DNA of 63,923 nucleotides, filler included, from Hyphochytrium catenoides (lineage: Eukaryota; Protista; Hyphochytriomycota), in NCBI GenBank assembly GCA_900088475.1. It is 9 parts of 9 records of this genome, joined end to end, with 100 filler letters (N's around TTAATTAATTAA, not from the genome) between each part and the next. Parts side by side here need not be neighbours in the genome. Positions count along the whole stretch, not along the records: positions 1 to 31,070 come from FLMG01002635.1; 8 more parts are not named here. One strand, written 5' to 3'. The position numbers were made by a program, and so were the translations under genes. How positions within the stretch are numbered: position 1 is the first letter of the stretch; each line of letters starts with the position of its first letter. The notes beneath the pieces were generated by a model. The model saw only the letters and a list, made by a program, of their open reading frames with translations, did no database searches and was not told where the DNA came from. Of the stretch, positions 8,363-29,818 are shown piece by piece.

Positions 8363-9898
8363 ATGAGCTTGCCTCCAGGATGGGCGTCTGCCAAGTCAGC
8401 GGATGGCAAGGTAAGAGATCAAACTCCTCCTCTATAAATGTCAGTCAGTCGGAACAGTTTTGGTAGCTGACTTTTCTATCATCCTCGGCATATTGTGACA
8501 CTCCTACGCCTGACAGACACTGCCGCTAATATGTTCCTCTTCTTCCGCATTGGCTCGCATATTTGTTCCTGCTCCGCTTCCTGCTTGCTTTATATCCCAT
8601 AGGAGTACTACTATAATCGAGTTACAAAAGCAACTCAGTGGGAGAGACCAACCAGCCCTGCTCTCCCAGCAGCCAGTAGTAGCAGAGCCATTGTGGCAAG
8701 GGCCCAGACGCAAGCAACGGTAGCTGCGGCCGCAGCTTCCCCTGCTCCAGCTGCCACCGGTGGTCGGGGAGACCTCCTGGCGGCCATACAGCGCGGAACA
8801 AAATTGAAAAAAGTCAGCACAAAGGAACCAGCCCCTGTTGGTGGACGGTAAGGCAGAAATTTCTCTTTGGTCTAACTCTCTTTTCGTCTCGTTTACCCTT
8901 CCCTTCCTTCATCTCTTCTGTGCCAACAAGGAAGACTCACACGTGTGCTTTTCTTTCACTACTCATCGCTCTGCAACTCTGGGTTGTCCTTGTCTTCTCG
9001 GCTATTACCATTCCGCTTTCCAGCGCTGGAGGAGACACCGGAGGTGGCGGAGGGCCGGTAGGTGGCGGCGGGGGAGGAGGAGGAGGAGGTGGGCCGTTTG
9101 GAGGTGGAGGCGGGGGCAACGACCTGATGGCTGCCATTAAAAACGCCCAGCTTAGGCGAGCTCAGAACCAGGGCAGGCAAGTCGCTCACTTCCTTGCGCA
9201 AGGTCTTTAGACTTCCCACGTCTCTCTCCTACTTCTCTCCTCATATGGTATACATACAGACATGTACTCTATCGCTTGTGCTCCCAAGGCCTTCAACTCT
9301 TACCATCCCTTAGCGTTTATCCAAGCTCCTTGTGACCCCGCCATAACCTATCGACGCTGCTCTCTCCACTATCTCTCTGTGCTCTGCACCTTCGGCATCG
9401 TCATATGTAGCCTAAGCGGCGGGAAAGAACCCAGTCCTAGCTCTTCTCCACCTCGTAGCACCGGCACAGCAGCAGCTGCCGATGCACTCAGAAAAAGTGG
9501 AATCTTTTCTTCCTCTTCCTCCACGACTCCAGCAAGAAAATTTTCCATCGGTGCTTCTAGTGTCTCTAATGGTAGGTGCTCTGTTCAAGAGAACGTGCTG
9601 CATATCGCCGTCCATATCGACCCGAATCTCTTGCTTTCTTCTGCGCGGAGCAGAGTCCCACATCACGTCTTTTCTTCTTGTGACTGAGTTGGAGATAAAC
9701 GAGGTTCTAAGCTATTATGTGCGTCCTGAGTGACCTTACTTTAAGCTTTTGCTTAACCATTATCCTTCTCTCTCCTCTCTCCCTGCAGGTGATACATCCT
9801 CAGGCAGTTTAGAGTCACGAGTGAGTGCCTTGGAGTCCCAGCTCGTGTCCATTGAGAGCAAGCTTGACAAATTGTTAGCCTTCCACAATATCACCTAA
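8363..9898 (+). CDS. WW + 2x WH2 + C-terminal coiled-coil protein (putative actin regulator), 5 exons
   Basis: The spliced product contains MSLPPGWASAKSADGK|EYYYNRVTKATQWERP (canonical WW), GRGDLLAAIQRGTKLKKV (WH2), a poly-Gly linker, NDLMAAIKNAQLRRA (WH2), an S/T-rich linker and LESRVSALESQLVSIESKLDKLL (heptads), then TAA at 9896-9898. Confidence 0.85.
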
Positions 9899-10130
9899 TG
9901 TACACTTCTTCACCCGTTCGGCAAGCCCGATCTTGCACTAGGACTAGAGGACATAATGAGGCTGGTACAAGAGATTAGAGCAAACAAGGCACCGGGTCAA
10001 TAGTGTTCGCTAGGAATCTCAGCTAGACCCTCTCTATGTCTTCTTCTTGAAGATCATCCGTGTCCTGGCAGATAGACCTGTGATGGTCTTGGAGCTGCTG
10101 CATTTTCATGTCTTTGCAGAGGAATACTCC

Positions 10131-16820: not shown

Positions 16821-19641
16821 ATGGCGGCAAGCAAGGTTAGCACAGAGTTCATAGGAGAGATCACTGCGCTCAAGAAGCAGCAAAATGCCGATGAAGCACT
16901 CCGAACTCTGCAGAAGATTGCCGCTCATGTGGCGCCAATCATGAAGGTCTGAGCTCCTCCGTCCCCGTCTTTGCCTCGTGCACCTTCAAAGTGGTTTGAG
17001 AAAGATAGACCTAGGCCTCTAGCCTCTTTGACCCTATCAAAACAATGCTGACCGCATGGCCCTTTCAATAGAAGCGGAGCTGGTTTGTCGGCAAGCTGCA
17101 GGAATTCTTTCCTTCCAATCGCAATCTGCTGGGCATGAATGTCAACCGGGGGGCCAAAATCTTCGTTCGCTGTGAGTCTAAACTCTTTTTGGACTCCTCT
17201 TCCTGCCTACCATTTTCTCTTTCTCTCACGCTGTCAATCTTCCCTTACACCGGTGGCTTTCTCTCTCTTCTTTGCGGCTGAGAGTGTCTCCACCGTCTTT
17301 CTCTCATCTCTCTCTCTTTTACTTCCTCTGTTGGTTTATCACTGCAGTGCGGCCGGCACACGATGAGAAGAGCTTTTATCCCTATCATCATGTCCTGGGG
17401 ACGATGCTGCACGAGCTGGTGCACATGGTGAGTCTGGACTCCTTAAACTTGCTGATCTAGCTCCTTTCTTTCAATCTGCTCTTCACCTGTCGTCTCTGCT
17501 ACTTCCCATTCTGTCGGTCCTCTTTTCGGTTTGACTTGCTGCTTGCCCGCGTCGTCTCCTCGTAGATTGGTTCTGCTCTTCAGTCGCTGCCTCAGACTCT
17601 TGTATTTGTTCCCATTCTTCTCTCATTCTCTCTCTCTGTCTCTGTCTCTATCTCTCGCGCCTTAGCTCTCTCTCTCGCGCTCTCTCTCTCTCTCTCTCTC
17701 TCACGCGCTCTCTCTCTATGTCCAGCTCTCTCTCTCGCTCTCTCCCTCTCTCTTTCCATTGTGTCTCCCCTTCTCTCTTTTCTTTCTTTTTCTCTCTCTT
17801 CATCCCACTTTCCTTTTGCTGTGGACCTCTCTCCCTCCTCTCGCGCTCTTCCTCTGGCTTTTTTTCTCTCACTTTCTCACTTCCTTCCTCTCCCATTCTC
17901 TCTCCACATTCCCTACTTCTTCTTTCTTCCTAGCCTCACTTTCTCCTTTCTAATTTTCTACTTTTCTCCTTTTCTCCTAGTCTCCGTTTGTTTGTCTGAT
18001 TTGATCTCTCTTCCTACAGTTCCCTGCACTGCTCTCACTCTCTTAACGCATATCAATTGACAGAAAATCGGTCCCCATAATGACGCTTTCTACAAGGTAA
18101 CAGAGTCGATAATGCTCCTCCATTGGCTTGGATACTCAGCTTATTCTAACAGTTCTTGGATGAGCTCTGGGAGGAGGCTGACATGATCTCAGATGGTGAG
18201 GGATTTTTAGCTGTTAGCCTTTGAACTATCATACCTCGTACTCGCCTCCTGGCTTATTCATCGTCATTCATCGTCATCATTAGGGAAAATGCTGCCTGCT
18301 ACTCCTTTCTCTGGAGCAGGCCATAAACTGGGTGGCAGGAATCCGATGAGCGCCAGAACTGCAGCGGCAGAGGCCGCGGAGAGACGACGGAAGGTGCGTG
18401 GAACGAGTGACCCTCTCAGACTATCTCGTGGCGGTCGATAGCTTTCCTCTCTCTCACCTTTGATTTACCGTCTGCTCGGATCTTAGCTTCTTCTGCACAC
18501 TCAGGTGCACATCTGCCGTTGATCTATTTGTCAGTGAGCTTGCTCTACCACTCGGTCAAAGTAGTGTGTCTCTGAACAGCTTACCATTGACTGCTTCTAT
18601 AAATTATGTCTCCTTACGGTTCTGCTATGTTGGTCAATAGAAGCAGATGTGGGGCGGAGCTTCAGGAGTCCGTCTAGGCGGAGACGAAGGTACCAACAAA
18701 CAGGTGAGAAGCAGACTCACTTTCAAGTGTCAAAAGCCACGGCCTTCTTCTGCATTGCCGCTGATTATTAATCTCAAGGCAAAAAGGAAGCTGACGCCGC
18801 AAGAACTCAGACGAAGAGCTCTTGAGGCAGCAGAAAGAAGGTACGACATATGAGAAAGGGTTAGATGTCACGGATTCTTAGCGCCTCGCCTCTTGCGCTC
18901 TTCTGTCTCCATCTTACTCCCAAGGTTGCGCGACAATGAGGAGTGCCGCGCTGTCCTAGACGGTCATTCCGTCACTATCGACGGTGTTGAAGAAGAACGC
19001 AGAGTAGAGCCAGAAGATATAAAACCCACTGTCCTCGTCCGCTCTCTTTCTATCTCAAACAAGGCTAAAACTACGGCTGGGACGGCCCCCAATGCCGTCC
19101 CTACGCGCGAGAAAGAACCAGAGATTGTCATCATTGATGACGAAGTCGACAATGAGAAGGAAAAGATAGTAGAAAGGATAGAAGATTCGGAGGAGGTGAC
19201 TCTCGTTGAGGTCGTTGTGCCACGTTCTCCGCTGTCGACTTGGTCCTGTCCTGAATGTACACTGATAAACAGCAGTAAACGGGAAGATTGTGAGGCCTGC
19301 GGCTTCTCTCAACGCACGGGAAAGCCTGGTGATGAAGTGGAAGTGATCTCTTCCAAGCTTCATACAGCTGCGTCTTCCTCTTCTCTTGGTCCCTCGTCTA
19401 ATGCTCCGTCTTCGCGGGATCGAAAGCGACCAGCCCCGGTAGAAGAGACCCTGGAGGACGAGGTGAGAGCAAAAGAGTTGATACTCCATCTCGATCTTCA
19501 AAGCACTTTCTTAGCTTCCTCTGTCCGTGGCCTCTTTTTGCTGTTCGTCTCCCGTTCTTTTTCCCTCTTTGTGTCTGTATTGTGGCATTGCTTTCTGCTA
19601 CTCTTTCCTTTTGCCTCCGTCAATTTGCCTCTTCCTCTCAT

Positions 19642-23508: not shown

Positions 23509-23884
23509 CCTGCCTTCCTCATCTACGTATTGCTTCTGGTCTCTTAGCCTCGATAAAGGAGCACCGTCAATGAGATCTGCAGCTTGCGTCTCCAGATCTT
23601 CATCTGAAGCTTCAGACTGAAGATTTCTTCATCATCAGAACCACGGCCTGCGGCGAATTCTTCCCTATTGACCTGATATTATCGTAGTACCTCTGCCCTA
23701 AATGTAGTAGGGCTAAAAGAAATTTAGGTATTATATTTGAGCAGCAGAGCGGGTAGTTGTAGTGATTGAGTCCAGAGTGGCGTCATTATATTGTCGCTTT
23801 TTATAGGAGAGATAGGCGTTAGCGGCATGACGTCGTGGTGTGAGTGATGGTTCTGAAGGTGCAGTTGTCACGACTCCCCAGACG

Positions 23885-23894
23885 TCATCAGAAT

Positions 23895-23954
<60 letters not shown>

Positions 23955-24076
23955 TCATCATCAAAATGCTCTCTCTCTCTCTCTCCTCTCTCTCACACTC
24001 ATCATCAAATGCTCGCTCTCTCTCTCTCTCTCACTCATCATCGAAATGCTCTCTCTCTCTCACTCATCATCGAAAT

Positions 24077-24110
<34 letters not shown>
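23885..24110. repeat. Compound minisatellite CACTCATCATC(G/A)AAATG-(CT)n, about 5 copies
   Basis: A fixed 17-18 nt motif recurs, separated by (CT)n tracts of variable length. Confidence 0.8.
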
Positions 24111-24112
<2 letters not shown>

Positions 24113-24487
24113 CCTCGGCTCTCTCTCTCTCTGTGTCTCTCTGTCTCTCTCTCTCTTTTCTCTCTCTTGCTTTTCTCTCTCTCTCCTCCTTCCTCTCAGT
24201 CTTTCCTCTCTCTCTGGTGTCTGCTGGGTCGTTTCGTCCCATTTGCACACCATCTCCACTCTTCTCTGTTTGCTCTCTCTTCCTCTCTCTTTCCCTCTGT
24301 GGTCGCTACATACGTTCTGTCTATAAGGCCGCCAGTCCCTTTTCGCTGCAGTCCGTCTATCCATCTGCTCGCGTGTCTCGCGAGTGTTGCCTGAGCTCTG
24401 CACCATCAAGACGACACCTCTCCTGACCAGTGTCCAAGAGGGTCTCGCTTCTTTCTGGAGAAAAGAGAGAGGGAAGGAGAGAGAGAG

Positions 24488-24518
<31 letters not shown>

Positions 24519-24550
24519 GAGACGCAGAAAGCACCTGCTGGTGGTTAAGG

Positions 24551-25216
24551 ATGGCGGCATTGCTAAGGCAGAGGCCGCGCTTGCGTCTCCTGCAGCTGCG
24601 GGAGATGCCAATCTTTGACCAACTCTGTCTCGAAGAGAAGCTGTTACGACACACAGAGGACAACTGGTAAGGATAGCAACCTCTCTCTTTCTTACTCTCT
24701 TTAATGATGAACCAACAGGTCTGAGCTTGGTCTCTCTCTCTCTCTCAGTCTCTCTCTCCGCAGGCTCTCTCTCTCCCCACAGTGTCTCTCCGCACCGTGT
24801 CTCTCCCTTTGTTCCTCTCTCTCTGTCCCTCTCTCTCTCTGTCTCTCTCTCTCTCTTTGTCTCTCCTCTATATTTGCATATATCCTCTCTTCTTGCTGTC
24901 TGCAACGGTCGGTCTCTGCCTCTCTCCTTCTGTCCTTTCCCTCTTCTTCCATTCTCTCTCTGCCCTTTCTCTCTTCTTGCATTCCACATACACTGCTGGC
25001 CAAGAGAGCTTTCTCTCTGTCTTTCACTTCTCGCGCTCTTGTTTGGCCCTCGTGGACTTCTCGCATCCCTTCCCACTAATCAATTTTGGCTTCTCCGCCC
25101 TCTCTCTTTGTCTTCTCTCTCTCTCTCTCTCTCTCCCTGTCTCTCTCTCTCTCTCTCTCTGTCTGTCTCTCTCTCTCTCTTTTCTCTATCCCTCTCTGGC
25201 GCTCTCTCGTCCTTCC

Positions 25217-25248
<32 letters not shown>

Positions 25249-25453
25249 TCTCTCTTTCTTTCTCTATCTTCCCCTCTGTCTTCCTCTTTCACTGACAGGT
25301 TCGTGGTGAACGAGGGAGAGATAGCTCCCACGGTAGTGTTAGGGATAAATGGCAAGCCAGAGCGGCTGCTGCACGTTGATAAAGTTAGAAGGTGAGAGGG
25401 GGCAGTAGGACGAGAGAGAGAGATGGACGATCGATGGACGGTTTAGGGAAAGA

Positions 25454-25484
<31 letters not shown>

Positions 25485-26084
25485 CGAGAAAAATGGGTAG
25501 AAGAGAAAGCAGAGAACAGTGGGAAGTGAAAGAGACCAGAGGGTCGGTACGAGAAAAGACAGCGCGAAAGAGGACACTCGCAATAACTCACCAGAGAGAG
25601 AGAGATGGGAAGAGAGAGAAAGAGAGAAAGAGCGAGAGAGCGAGAGAGAGTACAAGAAGGAGCAAGAGAGGGAGAGAGCGAGTCGTGACGGTTAGAGTGA
25701 AGAAAAGGCTTGCTAAGAAGATCGTAATTTAGGCAGGAGTTCCTTAGAGCGTAAACCATTTCCTTGCTGTCACTAATCTGTCTCTCTCTCTCTCTTTTCT
25801 CTCCATGTCGCTCCTCTGTGGTCTCTCTCGCTGTCCCAGTGACGGGATTCCGTTGATAAAGAGATTCTCAGGCGGTGGGACGGTGGTCGTGGACCGGAAC
25901 ACTGTCTTCACGGCATTCATTTGCAACAAAGGGGACATCACAGGCGTGGAGCCCTTTCCTCGGCCCATCATGAACTGGACAGAGAGCTTCTATAGACCTG
26001 TCTTTACAGATTTATGCGGCAATAAGCAGGTCTCTCTCTCTGTCTTCCTCTTTCTCTCTCTTTTTCATTCTTTCTTTCTTTCTT

Positions 26085-27836: not shown

Positions 27837-28991
27837 TCAGCTGCTGAAGCAAGCTCCCACGGCATCATTGAGAGCTACATCTGCTGCTGTCTTTCCTGCC
27901 TTGTTCGCCGCCTTTCTATCGGCTCCAGCAGCCAGCAGAACCTTCACCACAGAGGTGAAGCCACAGCGGGAAGCGAGGTGCAAAGCAGTGTTTCCTAAGA
28001 GCAAAGGGAAGAAGAGAAGCGCAAGCAGTTAGCGGGGAAAGAGAGAGAGAGTAAAAGTATCAATAAAAAGAGAGATGGACGAGAGAGTCAACGAGAGAAG
28101 AACAGAGAGGGAGAGAGGAGAAGGGAAAAGAGAGGAAGAGAGAGAGAGTCAGAAGGTGAAAAATGGTTCGCTTCCCCATGGTAATAGGAAGGGAGAATGA
28201 GGAGAAAATTGAGTTCGAGACAGAGAAGAAAACAGAGCCGCAAGTACAAAAAGAGAGAGAGAGAGACAGAGAGAGAGAGAGAGACCGAGAAAGAGAGAGA
28301 AAGACCGAGAGAGCGAGAGAGAGAGAGCAAAGAAAAACAAGCTCACCCTCTTTATCGGCTGCTTGAGCGTTAGCGCCCATTCCGATCAGCTTCTCCACCA
28401 GGGAAGAGTGTCCGTTGGTGACTGCCCGGTGGAGAGGAGTCACAGCGTTTCCATTGACAGCGTTCACATCTCCGCCAGCGGAGAGAAACATCTCACAGGG
28501 CGCGATGACTCCCCTGGCGGCCGCCCAGTGCAGAGGAGTATTCCCCGCATCGTCCTTAGTCTTCGGGTCAGCTCCTGCTTCCAAGAGGGCCTGCAGTTGA
28601 CCAAGAGGAGTGAGAGAGAGGAAGGAAAGAGAGAGAAAGAGAGCGAGAAGGAGGGAGAGAAAAGTTTCAAGAGAGAGACAGAGAAAGAGAGAAAGAAAGA
28701 GAGGGAGCGAGAGAGAGAGAAAGAAAGAGGGGGAGCGAGTGAAGGAGAGATGAAGAGAGAGAGGTAGGTGGCACAGCGACAGGATCGGGCAAGAAAAGGA
28801 AAGAGTGAGAGAGAAAAGAGGAGGGTAGGTCAACCGCAGACAGCAAGATAGGGAGAGGAGCAAATATAAGGAGGAGAGATAATGAAAGACGACAGAAGGA
28901 CATAAAGATGTACAGAAACAGAGAAAAATCTAGTGGTAGAATAAGCCAGAGAGAGAGAGAGAGATCGCTCTGTGTAAATAGGTAGATATAG

Positions 28992-29036
<45 letters not shown>

Positions 29037-29818
29037 CGACAAGAATAGCAAGAGAGATTAAGCTAGGGGTGGAGATAGAGAGAAAATAGAGGGAGAGTAA
29101 GGAGAAAGGAGCGGGAGCACGTTAAGTGCTAGAGAGAGGAATAGACAACAGCAACCTCCTCCCCAGGTTTGGAGAAGCAGAGGAGTTGCTTGGCCCTGCT
29201 ACCTTGATAATGTCTTCTTTGATGATGTTCGCCGCGTGATGCAGAGGGCGCATTCCTCCGTACCCAGCAGTCTGCAGCGCAATGGCGTCAGTCAGAACCT
29301 TTGCCTCTGTCTCTCTCTCTCTCTCACTCTCTCTCTCTCTCATTTACGCTCCTCTCATTTGCTCGCCGCACATTGCCCCCTCTCTAATAACGTTCTCTCT
29401 CTCTCTCTCCTCTGTCTCTCTAATGCTCTCTCTCTCTCTCTGTTGTTCTTTTCTCTGTCTCTCTTCTTCTGTCTTCTTCCCTCTCCTCTCCTCTGTCTAC
29501 CCTCTCTGTGTGTGTGTCTCTCTCCCTTTGTGTCTCTCCCTCTCCCCTTCGTGTGCCCTTTTCTCTTACCCTTTGTGTCTCTCTTCCCCTTCCTCCTCTT
29601 TCACCGGCCTAATGGCCTGGCCTTACCTCTACATCCACCTTCCGACTCAAAAGGAGAGACACTACCTCCAGGTTTCCGCTTCTGCAAGCCCAGATCAGCG
29701 GAGGGCAACCGAACTCGTCCTAGAAGCAGACACAGTGTATGTGTGAGAGCGGCCGCGAGAGGAGAGGAAGAGAAGGAGAGAGCGAGCGAGAGAGAGTGAG
29801 AGAGAGAAAAAAAAAAGT

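Follow-up and report, generated by a model that had tools for sequence, protein, structure and literature searches.

Does a short spliced gene of Hyphochytrium catenoides (Hyphochytriomycota) encode an actin assembly factor of Ena/VASP-like design that was put together from different parts? The question is raised by positions 8363-9898 on the (+) strand of the 63,923-nt stretch of assembly GCA_900088475.1 analyzed here (the window; nine parts of nine records joined end to end, with positions 1-31,070 coming from FLMG01002635.1), in which a sequence-only reading had proposed a ~245-amino-acid protein with an N-terminal WW domain, two WH2 motifs, and a trimeric C-terminal coiled coil. We put at roughly 0.6 the probability that this gene encodes an actin assembly factor based on WH2 motifs, targeted by its WW and self-associating, which would work independently of Arp2/3, either like Ena/VASP or like the clustered tandem-WH2 nucleators. 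Ena/VASP-type polymerases occur in animals and amoebae; we know of no report of Ena/VASP from the stramenopile lineage, and the elongation and protection of filament ends outside animals and amoebae are, formins apart, poorly mapped. If the proposal is true, the gene provides a compact, easily testable candidate that combines a proline-ligand module, WH2-type sites, and a terminal oligomerization helix, and it would amount to a natural experiment on whether clustered WH2s alone suffice for processive elongation. The hosts of the family to which it belongs are oomycetes, with major crop and fish pathogens among them and with actin-dependent tip growth, and chrysophyte algae. Should the product be a simple adaptor instead, it would represent an ordinary domain combination.

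A spliced gene of five exons

By sequence comparison, 8363-9898 (+) was confirmed as an intact, spliced protein-coding gene with five predicted exons (Table 1). Exon-by-exon translation gave a joined coding length of 717 nt, i.e., 238 amino acids; the compact spliced protein described earlier was thus recovered, with a length of 238 instead of ~245 residues. All four introns end in AG, and the reading frame continues through the codons split by introns [cg/c (R), ag/c (S), and g/gt (G), with a slash marking the splice junction] to a TAA stop codon at 9896-9898.

A hidden Markov model (HMM) of 20 members of the family described below was searched against the 1345 six-frame, stop-to-stop segments of positions 1-31070, and its top four matches were exon 2 (E = 1.9e-22), exon 5 (E = 7.9e-7; 25.1-25.9 bits), exon 3 (E = 0.029), and exon 1 (E = 0.36), which lie colinearly on the (+) strand. 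The exon 3 match spans HMM positions 95-136, corresponding to the poly-Gly run and second WH2 of oomycete members. Exons 2, 3, and 5 were also matched colinearly by tblastn with family proteins, with E-values of 1e-11 to 1e-17 for exon 2 and of 1.5e-9 (P0124) and 7.5e-8 (P0163) for exon 3. Together with the Pfam matches given below, the HMM matches bear out the spliced gene with a WW, a WH2, a poly-Gly run, a second WH2-like motif, and C-terminal heptads that had been read from the sequence.

The sole intron of the corresponding genes in Phytophthora ramorum (L004) and Aphanomyces euteiches (L006) occupies the same phase-0 DGK/EYYYN position as intron 1. In the family, the WW begins 2-5 residues after Met, to which the gene conforms, and both its start (MSLPPGW, compared with MSLPPNW at the N-terminus of P0169) and its stop, 6 residues past KLDKLL, coincide with the family ends. 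The colinear HMM matches, the common intron position, and the matching ends together indicate that the gene is real and complete at both ends. We therefore give next to no credence to a gene-model artifact or a decaying pseudogene, an explanation that can draw on the GC donor required by intron 3 and on the missing family motif 3 (see below) but that has to account for four exons matching the HMM colinearly, a start and a stop at the family positions, a retained intron position, and conserved parts free of frame breaks.

Exon 4 shows weak similarity to the family linkers (P0181, E = 6e-4 by tblastn; 2.0 bits with the family HMM), and ALRKS/FRKSL-like bits resembling it are present in P0169, P0074, and P0187. 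A word-index search with the open reading frame (ORF) containing exon 4 (region 52-104) returned no relatives, because the linker is too poorly conserved. Other frame-keeping paths exist, one of which skips this exon by joining a donor at 9203 (AAG/GTCTTT) to an acceptor at 9788. Exon 4 is not needed for the WW, the two WH2-type motifs, or the terminal helix.

On the opposite strand, a poly-Pro ORF at 8937-9137 (66 amino acids) was rejected as a coding candidate: it mirrors the GGN-encoded Gly run of exon 3, and its coding status is unsupported. This ORF could mislead ORF-based readers.

Table 1. Predicted exons, introns, and motifs of the gene, in positions of the window (a slash marks a splice junction)
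Feature	Position	Strand	Translated span	Content	Evidence
Exon 1	8363-8410	+	8363-8410	Start codon and first WW half, MSLPPGWASAKSADGK	Translation; WW profile; family HMM positions 1-17 map exactly here
Intron 1	8411-8602	+		GTAAGA...ATAG, phase 0, within WW, between DGK and EYYYN	Sequence; position kept in two oomycetes
Exon 2	8603-8847	+	8603-8845	Second WW half, Ala/Ser/Pro-rich linker, WH2 no. 1; reads EYYYNRVTKATQWERP...GGRGDLLAAIQRGTKLKKVSTKEPAPVGG	Pfam; family HMM; tblastn
WH2 no. 1 core	8774-8815	+		LLAAIQRGTKLKKV	Pfam PF02205
Intron 2	8848-9023	+		GTAAGG...TCCAG, Arg codon split cg/c	Sequence; frame arithmetic
Exon 3	9024-9176	+	9025-9174	Poly-Gly run (9040-9117) and WH2-like motif no. 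2; ends NDLMAAIKNAQLRRAQNQG	Family HMM; tblastn
WH2-like motif no. 2	9124-9162	+		LMAAIKNAQLRRA	Sub-threshold Pfam WH2; aligns with oomycete MMAAIKSGGNLRK
Intron 3 (tentative)	9177-9410	+		GC-AG type, CAG/GCAAGT...ATGTAG	Best-consensus frame-keeping path
Exon 4 (tentative)	9411-9571	+	9412-9570	Ser/Pro-rich linker with ALRKSG	Weak similarity to family linkers
Intron 4	9572-9788	+		ATG/GTAGGT...CCCTGCAG	Sequence; enumeration of splice paths
Exon 5	9789-9898	+	9791-9898	C-terminal helix and stop, DTSSGSLESRVSALESQLVSIESKLDKLLAFHNIT-stop	Translation; family HMM
Heptad region	9809-9877	+		LESRVSALESQLVSIESKLDKLL; R-hxxhE = RVSALE at 9818-9835	Translation; motif definition of PMC3653964

A conserved family in stramenopiles

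Judged by sequence, the gene is a member of a conserved, uncharacterized family of small, modular, mostly disordered proteins in stramenopiles. A HMMER search of 1.84 billion proteins together with a profile search yielded ~30 relatives of 207-268 amino acids with the same layout; with exon 2 as the query, HMMER returned many multi-WW proteins as well as a distinct set of 224-268 amino acids aligned across the whole exon from residue ~17-20. The HMMER search placed the family in Aphanomyces, Phytophthora, Albugo, Peronospora, and Peronosclerospora, the profile search added Bremia, Thraustotheca, Globisporangium, and the chrysophyte Spumella, and further members were found among transcriptome and metagenome contigs. 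Named relatives include Albugo candida A0A024GB20 (P0159), Phytophthora ramorum H3GSX1, KAL4087933 (P0095), Aphanomyces euteiches KAH9114413 (P0074), and Spumella elongata A0A7S3HE59 (P0177); the source databases call the members only "hypothetical," "WW domain-containing," or "WH2 domain-containing." The predicted architecture, looked for beyond this genome as the sequence-only reading had suggested, is thus not unique to it but widely conserved, and no characterized family with this layout was found. Nor did we find a description of a WW-WH2-coiled-coil family in the literature, where our coverage was incomplete and absence is unproven.

Family members begin with a WW, which a P/A/S-rich linker joins to a canonical WH2; then follow a variable second WH2, a Gly run, a motif that we call motif 3, a Ser/Pro linker, and a terminal helix. 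Pfam scans of ten full-length relatives found both WW and WH2 in each. The canonical WH2 pattern, G-R-G-x-LL-x-I-x-x-G-x-x-LKK, lies ~30-45 residues past the WW in the family and is present in the gene, and the second WH2 is clear in oomycetes and degenerate elsewhere. Motif 3, GFAEIMRKN[RK]EAAA[RK]K, is near-invariant across oomycete and chrysophyte members (by alignments and regular expression), has no match among Pfam families or solved structures, and is absent from members P0183 and P0187. The terminal helix reads [VL]E-x-RL-x-x-IE-x-KLDKIM-x-HL-x-I, with the stop 5-6 residues beyond it in the members scanned, P0183 being the sole exception (8 residues). An AlphaFold2 model of P0171, built with the family alignment, shows a WW sheet with a predicted local distance difference test score (pLDDT) of ~90, a WH2 helix (69-75), a motif-3 helix (158-173), and a terminal helix (212-229) with a pLDDT of ~90, the remainder being disordered.

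The gene shares with the family its size, its N- and C-termini, the position of the WW intron, and the order of WW, linker, WH2, Gly run, second motif, Ser/Pro linker, and terminal helix. It differs from it in sequence, with only ~40-48% identity over exon 2, and in having four introns versus one in the two oomycete genes checked. One deposited relative, P0091 (Peronosclerospora sorghi KAI9909712, 400 amino acids), retains the WW intron (DGK/VRPLV...LLQ/EYYYN) and extends ~140 residues past the usual family C-terminus, and it seems to be mis-modeled.

Just 3′ of the stop codon of the gene, in the frame of exon 5, the peptide GLEDIMRLVQEIRANKA at 9941-9991 (+) is ~50% identical to the motif GFADIMRKNREASARKA. 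This motif-3-like peptide was rejected as coding, given that it lies past the terminal helix, has E-values at chance level (0.6-2), and has no family-HMM match; its likeness to a family motif that is absent from the gene is probably a coincidence, if an odd one.

WW and WH2 modules

In Pfam scans, exon 1 matched WW profile positions 1-16 with 12.2 bits and exon 2 matched positions 17-31 with 26.1 bits; at the splice junction the halves meet without gap or overlap, and their combined score exceeds the 26.9-bit cutoff. Since profile positions 1-16 and 17-31 are divided between the exons, intron 1 cuts a single WW cleanly. When compared with solved structures, the family WW best matched ITCH/NEDD4L and, per domain, TCERG1, PRPF40A, and the Prp40 "YYY" WW. 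These matches show a predicted WW of the FBP11/PRPF40-TCERG1-like "YYY" type and hint at ligands of the PPLP or PPxY type.

The first of the two WH2 motifs in the sequence-only reading was shown by its Pfam match to be a canonical WH2 (35.3 bits against a cutoff of 23.1 bits; PF02205), whereas the second proved to be WH2-like and sub-threshold (11.1 bits). WH2 no. 1 carries KLKK, as the gene's version of the KLRK/KLKK block of a GAB-type WH2, and the distance from I to L in motif no. 2 equals that in the VASP GAB LAAAIAGAKLRKV (GAB sequence from PMC10340426). A profile search of the PDB with the family WH2 matched solved actin-bound WH2s, namely those of N-WASP (E = 5e-15), WIP (E = 1e-4), and MIM and WAVE2 (E-values up to 0.016), and the family profile matched the VASP GAB chain 2pbd_V with an E-value of 0.029. 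The WH2s of N-WASP, WIP, MIM, and WAVE2 resemble the GRG-LL-x-I-x-x-G-x-x-LKKV of the family; the gene and family differ from those proteins in lacking GBD, WH1, IMD, and an acidic CA tail, and their terminal coiled coil is foreign to them.

The C-terminal helix

Translation and family alignment show the last 20-25 residues to be a predicted amphipathic heptad helix that always stands at the extreme C-terminus. Exon 5 carries the heptads L-ESRV-SAL-ESQL-VSI-ESKL-DKL-L, in which the terminal family pattern x-[RQ]-L-x-x-I-E-x-K-L-D-K-[IL]-[ML] occurs as QLVSIESKLDKLL, followed by AFHNIT and the stop. The register places V, L, and L at a and L, L, I, and L at d, so that RVSALE reads Arg(g)-h(a)-x-x-h(d)-Glu(e), its V and L occupying a and d, respectively.

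R-hxxhE is a trimerization motif of short coiled coils and occurs in some dimers too (PMC3653964), and the trimer-motif rule had thus been stated correctly in the sequence-only reading; of the 30 tails compared in the family, 24 carry the motif at the equivalent heptad. The gene deviates in having Q at the R position of the family and in carrying its R-hxxhE one heptad upstream, in an extra heptad. Like the trimeric coils of coronin-1 and ccbeta, the tail keeps Arg(g)-h(a)-x-x-h(d)-Glu(e) in proper register within ~3 heptads, but it has no sequence match to coronin, and its Leu(a)/Ile(d) core also suits tetramers. Specifically, the family core has Leu at a and Ile at d and the gene has Ile/Leu at d, an arrangement that has also been linked to tetramers. 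Exon 5 produced only weak coiled-coil matches in Pfam (CLZ and the KCNQ tail, E ~0.01-0.02), and the weak coiled-coil matches in the PDB profile search were mostly tetrameric (pneumovirus phosphoprotein and KCNQ4), with a trimer (YadA) and a dimer (cortexillin) besides, all with E > 0.01. A trimeric tail is plausible on this pattern; of the earlier proposal, the motif stood, and the trimer is one option, given a core that fits the tetramer rule as well and PDB matches that are mostly tetrameric.

Comparison with Ena/VASP and other actin regulators

Ena/VASP proteins comprise EVH1, a proline-rich region, and EVH2, the latter made up of GAB (APGLAAAIAGAKLRKVS), FAB (20 residues), and a C-terminal tetramerization coil; their function needs clustering, and EVH1 binds proline ligands (PMC10340426). 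The family resembles them in having an N-terminal proline-ligand module, a WH2-type G-actin site (predicted in the family), a basic helix after a Gly run, and a helix at the extreme C-terminus that oligomerizes in VASP and is predicted to do so here. It differs in being much smaller and in having a WW instead of EVH1: a WH1 (EVH1) domain was not found by Pfam in the gene exons or in ten relatives. The Ena/VASP-like design proposed earlier, with a proline-ligand module, WH2/GAB-like sites, and a terminal helix, therefore holds as a fair functional analogy.

Whether the likeness extends to descent is a separate matter. The family could be a true, divergent EVH2 homologue (GAB, FAB, and terminal coiled coil) in which a WW has replaced EVH1, and both the shared order (a WH2/GAB-like site, a Gly run with a basic amphipathic helix, and a terminal helix) and the GAB spacing of motif no. 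2 are in keeping with this idea, as is DEMAAALARRRK of P0187, which is identical to the human VASP FAB core at 9 of 12 residues. However, the published VASP FAB peptide scored only 3.3 bits on the family HMM and fell where the second WH2 lies instead of at motif 3; VASP_tetra, which represents the right-handed tetramerization coil of Ena/VASP, was unmatched in Pfam scans of exon 5 (E ≤ 10) and of ten relatives (E ≤ 1), and the VASP tetramerization-domain chain was not among the matches of the PDB profile search (E ≤ 10). In addition, P0134, a protein of the WCA type described below, has a similar basic helix (DQLSMAMEKRRK), so such a helix is not specific to EVH2. Because the FAB match is weak and misplaced, VASP_tetra and WH1 are unmatched, poly-proline is missing, and P0134 has a similar helix, homology with EVH2 is not demonstrated, and we consider common descent quite improbable. 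In the ESM Atlas, a feature search with the EVH2-like portion of P0171 returned nothing usable.

The WH2 of the family is nearest to that of N-WASP, and a basic amphipathic helix comes after a WH2, in the manner of a C region, in the case of both motif 3 and motif no. 2, so a degenerate WASP-like factor built of two V elements (WH2s) and a C-like helix, lacking A yet still contacting Arp2/3, has to be weighed as well. Motif 3 does not fit the WASP C-domain pattern, in which three large hydrophobic residues stand at a spacing of three, and the family does not appear in the WASP inventory of the same study (PMC3298513). As the sequence-only reading had noted, the acidic, Trp-containing tail of the WASP family is missing: it is absent from the translated exons 4 and 5, and no Trp follows the WW in the gene. 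On these sequence features, the family is not a member of the WASP family, and a degenerate WASP-like factor is highly improbable. A WCA-type protein was encountered in the same searches, namely P0134 (455 amino acids, ENA metagenome), with four WH2s, a C-like helix, and an acidic ...DSDWE tail. The "NPFGGGG-RGG-LL" lead-in of the family recurs in the WH2s of P0134, which suggests a common origin of the family WH2 and the WASP-like WH2s of this lineage.

In Spire, Cordon-bleu, and VopL/VopF, multiple WH2s are gathered, sometimes by a C-terminal oligomerization domain. The family differs from these proteins in having just two WH2-type motifs per chain and no KIND, Spir-box, or VCD, and the likeness is one of general principle, with sequence compared for WH2 only.

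Proposed mode of action

In the actin assembly factor that we favor, the WW would dock the protein onto a proline-rich partner, WH2 no. 1 would bind an actin monomer, and a second actin contact would be made past the Gly hinge by the weaker, WH2-like motif no. 2. The C-terminal helix would self-associate into a parallel trimer or tetramer, thereby presenting a cluster of 6-8 actin-binding motifs at the site defined by the WW, where filaments could be assembled without Arp2/3. The mode may be barbed-end elongation or anti-capping, as with Ena/VASP, or nucleation, as with oligomerized tandem-WH2 proteins. The ~6 WH2s per trimer, the nucleator or polymerase role, and the convergence with VASP put forward in the sequence-only reading likewise stand as proposals. 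A broader claim, that the family constitutes an unrecognized class of oligomeric WH2-based actin assembly factors and a functional counterpart, possibly a distant homologue, of Ena/VASP with the WW doing the job of EVH1, is one that we hold only tentatively and regard as doubtful.

Several observations weigh against such an assembly factor. Motif no. 2 falls below the Pfam cutoff with an E-value of 0.33, and no clear motif 3 was found in the gene by regular expression or alignments, the nearest candidate being at most AADALRKS in exon 4; this exon and the GC-AG intron 3 are themselves tentative predictions. A poly-proline stretch of the kind that recruits profilin is absent, the linker of the gene being Ala/Ser/Pro-rich without Pro runs, and it is also absent from the P/A-rich relatives inspected. 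The tail helix is only ~3 heptads long, matches neither VASP_tetra nor the VASP tetramerization chain in the scans described above, and may be a partner-binding rather than a self-associating helix.

That last point is shared by another explanation, which makes the protein an adaptor or buffer of the WIP/verprolin or thymosin kind that binds one actin monomer and keeps it or hands it to a WW-bound partner (e.g., a formin FH1 or some other proline-rich protein), with a C-terminal helix that binds another protein and no intrinsic assembly activity. The gene has a single canonical WH2, as many non-oomycete relatives have a single clear one, and the family WH2 is closer to those of N-WASP and WIP than to the VASP GAB. 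Moreover, the WW is of the formin-binding-protein type, and the fragment P0186 was labeled "WAS/WASL-interacting protein" by its source. An adaptor of this kind fits less well with the regular a/d core and the conserved R-hxxhE of the tail, which are typical of self-associating short coils, or with the position of the tail at the very C-terminus, like the oligomerization modules of VASP and coronin. We judge the adaptor unlikely, though worth taking seriously, and retain the WW-targeted, self-associating actin assembly factor as the preferred interpretation.

Surrounding sequence

Elsewhere in the window, parts of other spliced genes were recognized, including a RanBP2-type zinc-finger exon at 19241-19306 (+) and an ankyrin-repeat block at 28363-28602 (−). 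An exon of a lipoate-protein ligase lies at 25814-25993 (+) (LplA-B_cat, 32 bits), and its best relatives, at identities of ≤65%, come from plants, the haptophyte Prymnesium, green algae, and chlamydiae, a spread that hints at a plastid-bearing source sparsely covered by protein databases. Two assembly gaps (runs of N) are located near 3.8 kb and 30.5 kb. Extended dinucleotide tracts, (CT)n/(GA)n, occur in many places, e.g., at 1151-1858, 23840-25395, and 29236-29799; they translate as SLSLSL or RERERE and produce a strong local purine/pyrimidine skew between the strands.

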